DNA of 64,000 nucleotides from Isurus oxyrinchus (Eukaryota): NCBI GenBank assembly GCA_026770705.1, contig JANJGN010000071.1, positions 2,418,001 through 2,482,000 of the forward strand, given 5' to 3'. Within the stretch, counting starts at the first letter, position 1, and each line of letters begins with the position of its first letter. This document shows, piece by piece, positions 22,690 to 22,806 of this stretch. A program made the position numbers and the translations under genes. The notes beneath the pieces were generated by a model. It did not search any database. It saw only the letters and a program-made list of their open reading frames with translations, and was not told where the DNA came from.

Positions 22690-22806
22690 GGCTCCTTGCT
22701 GCAGCGCCAGAAGAGAATGGGCAGACAGCAGCGCTGCAGATTCTGCTGTAACTGCTGTAATTGGAGAGAACCAAATGAGACTTGTGGTATCTGCTGTAGA
22801 TTTTAG
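22690..22806 (+). CDS. HAMP: Hepcidin-like exon 3: GSLLQRQKR / MGRQQRCRFCCNCCNWREPNETCGICCRF*
   Basis: ttttccAG acceptor; furin site RQKR; eight cysteines in the hepcidin pattern C-x2-CC-x-CC-xn-C-G-x-CC; stop TAG 22804-22806. Confidence 0.95.
   Translation, partial: GSLLQRQKRMGRQQRCRFCCNCCNWREPNETCGICCRF

Follow-up and report, generated by a model that had tools for sequence, protein, structure and literature searches.

A shark hepcidin gene with a replaced N-terminal epitope and a long hairpin loop: a candidate defence-type partner of a canonical-type hepcidin

Analysis of a 64 kb stretch of shark DNA (the window) revealed an intact gene for a peptide that is, almost certainly, a true and expressed member of the hepcidin family. 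We favor, with a probability of about 0.58, the reading that it is a lineage-specific, HAMP2-like defence partner in a two-type hepcidin system, parallel to teleost Hamp2. This defence-type reading is drawn from the finding that the same animal also transcribes a canonical SHLSIC-type hepcidin. The proposed precursor of 88 residues, with signal peptide, propeptide and an RQKR convertase site, would be processed to a 29-residue peptide with four disulfides, or to a 23-residue form if a second motif, RQQR, were also cut. The predicted product would keep the hepcidin Cys core, Cys7 and Phe9, carry Arg/Gln/Arg in place of His3/Phe4/Ile6, and have a hairpin tip longer by 3-4 residues. It would then be secreted as a cationic effector of host defence or immunity that acts weakly or not at all on ferroportin.

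The peptide, its gene and its transcripts

Translation of positions 22717-22806 (+) gives MGRQQRCRFCCNCCNWREPNETCGICCRF followed by a stop codon, a peptide of 29 residues with five Arg, two Glu and no His; length, Arg and Glu counts agree with the first-pass annotation of this DNA. Its eight Cys stand at positions 7, 10, 11, 13, 14, 23, 26 and 27 in the hepcidin pattern, and the spacing C-x2-CC-x-CC-loop-C-x2-CC is found at the C-terminus of the precursor. When all six frames were scanned, this pattern occurred a single time across the window. The Pfam hepcidin profile PF06446 matches with 32.1 bits (E = 1.4e-7, profile positions 24-53 of 53), above the curated cut-off of 27 bits, and this score together with the unique Cys pattern excludes a chance match. 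The sole solved structure matched in the profile/HMMER comparison is the bass antimicrobial hepcidin 1s6w, of 21 residues. The Cys pattern of the 29-mer is also compatible with the four-disulfide pairing described for hepcidin (PMC7915682).

Broader searches were less informative. In the ESM Atlas a hepcidin cluster came up at only 0.75, which is no more than a lead. A HMMER search of 1.84 billion representatives with the 38 residues of exon 3 returned nothing at E <= 0.001, which is expected for a short Cys-rich query and uninformative on novelty. A word-based homologue search with region 18-57 of the open frame at 22633-22803 found no candidate with three common words, missing even the teleost CRFCCNCC hepcidins, a limit of the method. 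AlphaFold2, run on exon 3 alone and without an alignment, generated a helical model of low confidence (pLDDT 64) that is unusable.

Contigs from public runs, X1 and X4 among them, were mapped on 18500-23100 for joints and depths. The features of the gene and of the encoded peptide are as follows.

18611-18616 (+): TATA-like box TATAAG; about 30 bp further down, at 18644, lies the start of an RNA contig of X4
18688-18780 (+): exon 1 coding part from the ATG at 18688, 31 residues, MGSSQMKWRLVLFTLTLLLSLQLSHFFSLSR, a hydrophobic leader, then donor GTAAGC
20369-20425 (+): exon 2, 19 residues, VDTALGSSTIEKSVDSPDT, propeptide; acceptor ...TTTTTGCAG, donor GTAGGT; both of its joints seen in X1 and X4
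22690-22716 (+): start of exon 3, propeptide end GSLLQRQKR, with the R-Q-K-R convertase motif at 22705-22716
22717-22734 (+): N-terminal segment of the predicted mature peptide, MGRQQR, six residues before Cys7
22735-22758 (+): first Cys block, CRFCCNCC, compared below with sea bass and human hepcidins
22759-22782 (+): hairpin loop NWREPNET, eight residues, with an N-E-T sequon at 22774-22782
22783-22806 (+): second Cys block, CGICCRF, and stop codon
22807-23100 (+): 3' untranslated region, at least to 23100, with X1 depth of 7e5-8e5 in bins 22812-23100

The gene is intact, and its three exons (18688-18780, 20369-20425 and 22690-22806, +) encode 31 + 19 + 38 = 88 residues, which is the usual size of a hepcidin precursor. 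By its look, the exon 1 product is a signal peptide. Both introns are bridged by GT..AG joints, the first (18780 > 20369) in 11 contigs of X1 and one of X4, and the second (20425 > 22690) in nine contigs of X1 and one of X4. In a scan for poly(A) signals, the first AATAAA past the stop codon lies at 23578; as a candidate signal, it suggests that the 3' untranslated region may be about 770 nt long.

Summed depth in X1 reaches 1.7e5-8e5 in the exon bins and roughly 3e2-2e3 in repeat-free intron bins, so that exon depth is 100-1000 times intron depth. The splice joints and this excess of exon over intron depth identify the run labelled 'RNA?' as RNA, and the gene family as very strongly transcribed. 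The majority of X1 contigs differ from the window at two positions, 20425 (G>T, synonymous) and 22802 (T>A, which turns the C-terminal Phe into Tyr). The copy or allele with the strongest expression is thus a close sister whose product ends in ...CCRY, and the share of the window locus in this expression is uncertain. About 18% of the depth at 22802 carries the window's own letter, and apart from this position no site in the mature coding part is variable at the 10% level. Unique intron pieces were matched with 0-1 differences at a depth of 480-1240, which fits pre-mRNA from this copy or an identical one.

The two majority differences would also be expected if the family had been amplified recently and the window copy were a drifting, functionally redundant duplicate, with features of no adaptive meaning and with transcripts that come mostly from sisters. 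We regard this as very improbable. The frame is intact, all eight Cys are present, the splice sites of both introns are canonical and a TATA box precedes the gene. The window letter at 22802 and the closely matching intron pieces point in the same direction.

Several further observations concern the introns and the repeats of the window. One contig of X1 joins the exon 2 donor at 20425 to an AG acceptor at 21609, with a depth of about 840 compared to more than 16000 for the main joint; read as a cryptic exon within intron 2, 21610-21694 (+) gives AYIIHREAG in frame and then a stop, and looks non-productive. Both hepcidin introns hold tandem arrays with units of 37 bp and 33 bp (18982-19653, 19716-19954 and 21958-22224), and similar arrays are found at about 8224-8805, 31956-32258, 44800-45900 and 60354-60965. 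These arrays are covered by contigs of all four runs, from two organisms, at depths of up to 5e5, and such a pile-up marks them as abundant, transcribed genome-wide repeats. A (TG)n-rich microsatellite with imperfect repeats occupies 23108-23400, beyond the part of the 3' untranslated region at 22807-23100. At the start of the window, positions 1-3100 form a long low-complexity block, proline-rich or GC-skewed and open in several frames on both strands, which is probably repeat DNA with no gene.

N-terminal segment, loop and cleavage sites

The bioactive epitope of hepcidin resides in its first nine residues, chiefly in a patch of His3, Phe4, Ile6 and Phe9 (PMC7915682). At these positions the 29-mer has Arg3, Gln4, Arg6 and Phe9, so that one of the four patch residues is retained, as is Cys7. 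The D/Q-T/S-H-F/L-P/S-I/L motif before Cys7 is absent, the peptide reading MGRQQR-C-R-F, and with Arg as residue 3 and no His anywhere in the 29-mer the X-X-His copper/nickel site is absent as well. The segment before the first Cys has six residues, equal to that of human hepcidin-25 and of sea bass Hamp1 and Hamp2. The earlier description of a peptide lacking the ferroportin-binding N-terminus goes too far: the residues are replaced and the segment is not deleted, the six-residue length, Cys7 and Phe9 all being kept.

The peptide was compared with known hepcidins (sea bass peptides from PMC5665920, human from PMC7915682). The closest likeness is to sea bass Hamp2 (HSSPGGCRFCCNCCPNMSGCGVCCRF), a type described as being without ferroportin regulation (PMC5665920). 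The first Cys block, CRFCCNCC, is identical to that of Hamp2 at 8/8 positions, to that of sea bass Hamp1 at 7/8 and to that of human hepcidin at 6/8, and the second block agrees with Hamp2 at 6/7 (CGICCRF and CGVCCRF). As in this teleost type-2 hepcidin, the Q-S-H-L N-terminus is missing and the loop holds P-N-x-S/T. In contrast to sea bass Hamp2, the loop has eight residues instead of five, the extra ones being NWRE, and the N-terminal segment is the Arg-rich MGRQQR instead of HSSPGG.

With hormone-type hepcidins (human hepcidin-25; sea bass Hamp1, QSHLSLCRWCCNCCRGNKGCGFCCKF) the peptide shares the PF06446 match, the spacing of the eight Cys outside the loop, the first Cys at position 7, and Phe or another aromatic residue at position 9. 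The three exons and the R-x-K/R-R propeptide site are likewise common to both, as are the Siglec/MAG-type neighbors and the GGCGCC motif in the proximal promoter that are described below. Unlike these hormones, it has Arg3, Gln4 and Arg6 for His3, Phe or Leu4 and Ile or Leu6, it has no X-X-His site, and its loop, which includes a sequon, has double the length of the human one. Net charge, calculated as +3 for the 29-mer, +4 for sea bass Hamp1 and +2 for both sea bass Hamp2 and human hepcidin, does not discriminate between hormone and defence types.

The loop was correctly called by the first-pass annotation: NWREPNET lies between Cys14 and Cys23, and N20-E-T22 is a sequon. Its eight residues compare with four in human hepcidin and five in both sea bass hepcidins. 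HMMER aligns its P-N with the P-N of the bass loop PNMSG, leaving NWRE as an insertion, and the aligned teleost N-M-S of sea bass Hamp2 is a sequon too. When the other residues were shuffled around fixed Cys, a sequon appeared in 8% of trials and one inside the loop in 4%. Given this chance level and the N-M-S of Hamp2, the sequon is weak evidence. Native bass hepcidin was reportedly isolated unglycosylated. A reading of the 'doubled loop' as an internal duplication was rejected, since by eye there is no repeat between the NWRE and PNET codons, and 'doubled' describes the length only. In the complex with ferroportin, the hepcidin loop is highly variable and largely extracellular, the N- and C-termini being buried (PMC8235187); being variable and exposed, a loop of this length argues neither for nor against hormone action.

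A second, minimal R-x-x-R motif, RQQR, is present at 22723-22734, directly before Cys7. Cleavage there, or trimming by an aminopeptidase, could make the true mature product a shorter peptide of 23 residues starting at Cys7, comparable to hepcidin-20, and the odd N-terminus would then lie outside the active molecule. Precedents exist in human hepcidin-20 and hepcidin-22, and native bass hepcidin is said to have been isolated in a form of 21 residues where 26 had been predicted. Such a product would resemble N-truncated hepcidin-20 in starting at or near Cys7 without the ferroportin-binding end; unlike in hepcidin-20, a second basic motif within the sequence itself, and not trimming, would be responsible for the truncation. 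However, RQKR is the stronger R-x-K/R-R site, and a disulfide-bonded Cys at P1' would be an unfavorable convertase substrate. In the canonical-type fragment described below, cleavage at RQKR leaves the six-residue N-segment of all hormone hepcidins, which supports the 29-mer here. By motif strength, RQKR thus appears to favor the predicted 29-mer; a 23-mer from an additional cut at RQQR is possible, and a shorter form as the true mature product seems to us quite unlikely. The proviso of the first-pass annotation, that the real cleavage site may differ, still applies.

A canonical-type sister transcript

One contig of X1 runs along the window through the Met codon, whose last base is 22719, and diverges from there on. 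Translated in frame by hand, its 38-letter end reads S-H-L-S-I-C-M-Y-C-C, and with the common Met this gives M-S-H-L-S-I-C, to be compared with Q-S-H-L-S-L-C of sea bass Hamp1. In this fragment position 3 is His, position 4 is hydrophobic, position 6 is Ile and position 9 is aromatic. Over the upstream part and pro-region the contig is at least 95% identical to the window gene, so that it derives from the gene family of the same animal and contamination is ruled out. Judged by this one contig end, a hepcidin whose N-terminus is of the hormone type is also expressed in this animal. The coexistence of the two types in one animal is a further likeness to teleost type-2 hepcidin.

The two types have their pro-region in common, yet about 10 of the 15 bases coding for residues 2-6 differ between them. 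We infer that such a conserved prepro-part with a sharply diverged mature end is of the kind typical of host-defence peptide families and of lineage-specific duplication. Because the canonical-type transcript has a near-identical pro-region, the split looks lineage-specific, and with this identity of at least 95% to its own canonical-type partner, the window gene probably arose by a duplication separate from that of teleost Hamp2. The first-pass annotation had offered three alternatives: an antimicrobial-type hepcidin arising independently of teleost HAMP2, an ancestral defence form, and a hormone co-evolved with a divergent ferroportin. The first of these appears to fit best, given the SHLSIC-type transcript and the common pro-region, while the ancestral form finds no support in these results.

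Some features may speak against a defence role. Cys7, Phe9, the position of the first Cys and the C-terminal block are all kept, and in known hepcidin the C-terminal block is buried in ferroportin along with the N-terminus (PMC8235187). The predicted net charge of the 29-mer is not above that of sea bass Hamp1. The X1 majority transcripts differ at 20425 and 22802, and the gene's own share of expression is uncertain. As for other sharks, a hepcidin has been detected in the nurse-shark plasma proteome, the supplement of which contains no hepcidin sequence (PMC9207270), and the literature searched gave no account of an elasmobranch hepcidin, neither of its sequence nor of its function.

Promoter, neighboring genes and hormone function

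Outside the transcribed part of the gene, the following features of the promoter and the neighborhood were identified.

18469-18478 (+): candidate BMP-responsive element GGCGCCAGAC, with GGCGCC as its core and an AGAC SMAD box after it; the transcript appears to start about 175 bp downstream
13209-13616 (+) and 31412-34727, 38276-38764, 49559-51185, 58508-58906 and 60969-63362 (-): several Siglec-type genes, with exons for V-set domains bearing the Ig_CD22 signature, for C2-set domains and for Ig domains

By motif scan, the GGCGCC at 18469 is the only one in the window, and both BMP-responsive elements of the human HAMP promoter have this core (PMC3879105). The chance of such a placement by position alone is about 0.4%; CpG-rich motifs, however, cluster at promoters. 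A C/EBP-like TTGCACAAG is located at 18427. As to a STAT3 element, the motif scan found no TTCNNNGAA site within 17900-18690. As a motif, GGCGCC would be the best argument for regulation of the iron/BMP type. It would be expected for an iron/BMP-regulated hepcidin, and in this respect it may count against the defence-type reading.

Siglec-type exons with V-set plus Ig_CD22 and C2-set domains flank the hepcidin gene on both sides. The best solved matches of these flanking genes are myelin-associated glycoprotein (MAG), sialoadhesin, Siglec-5/7/8 and CD33. Mammalian HAMP adjoins MAG and CD22. With its Siglec/MAG/CD22-like neighbors, the position of the shark gene is consistent with the ancestral HAMP locus. 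No USF2 was seen in the window, nor a second hepcidin copy or stray hepcidin exons.

The promoter motif bears on the possibility that the peptide has kept the role of an iron-regulatory hormone, perhaps as the main one. Ferroportin would then be bound via Cys7, Phe9 and the C-terminal core, and the altered N-terminus would be matched by changes in the animal's own ferroportin or in one of the two ferroportins of some cartilaginous fish. The only GGCGCC of the window, followed by AGAC at a promoter-proximal distance, is consistent with such a hormone, as are the extremely high exon depth in X1, the conserved length of the N-segment, the conserved Cys core and a loop of the variable, extracellular kind. 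Moreover, cartilaginous fish have a ferroportin with an equivalent of C326, and some have a second ferroportin (PMC8235187). Against a hormone role, the second ferroportin is without the thiol Cys on which the binding of hepcidin depends (PMC8235187), and a duplicated promoter would bring its BMP-responsive element along whatever the peptide does. Positions 3, 4 and 6 are Arg, Gln and Arg, whereas teleost and mammalian hormone-type hepcidins keep the His3, Phe4 and Ile6 positions, and the animal also produces a canonical-type transcript. We therefore consider a hormone role unlikely, although it deserves serious consideration, and retain the defence-type partner as the preferred reading.

The first appearance of hepcidin, and of a ferroportin of the Cys326 type, is in jawed fish (PMC8235187). 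As a more tentative extension, which goes beyond the single gene and which we would not presume, cartilaginous fish might have evolved a two-type system of their own, paralleling teleost Hamp1/Hamp2, in which a SHLSIC-type hormone stands beside a multi-copy long-loop type, rich in Arg, massively expressed and maybe N-glycosylated; the long-loop type might bind the second ferroportin paralogue of some cartilaginous fish. If true, a hormone/defence split in sharks that is independent of the one in teleosts would provide a second natural experiment on the residues that make hepcidin an iron hormone. Two short synthetic peptides from one animal make this question of hormone residues directly testable, and the double-length, perhaps glycosylated loop would test the claim that the loop stays outside ferroportin.
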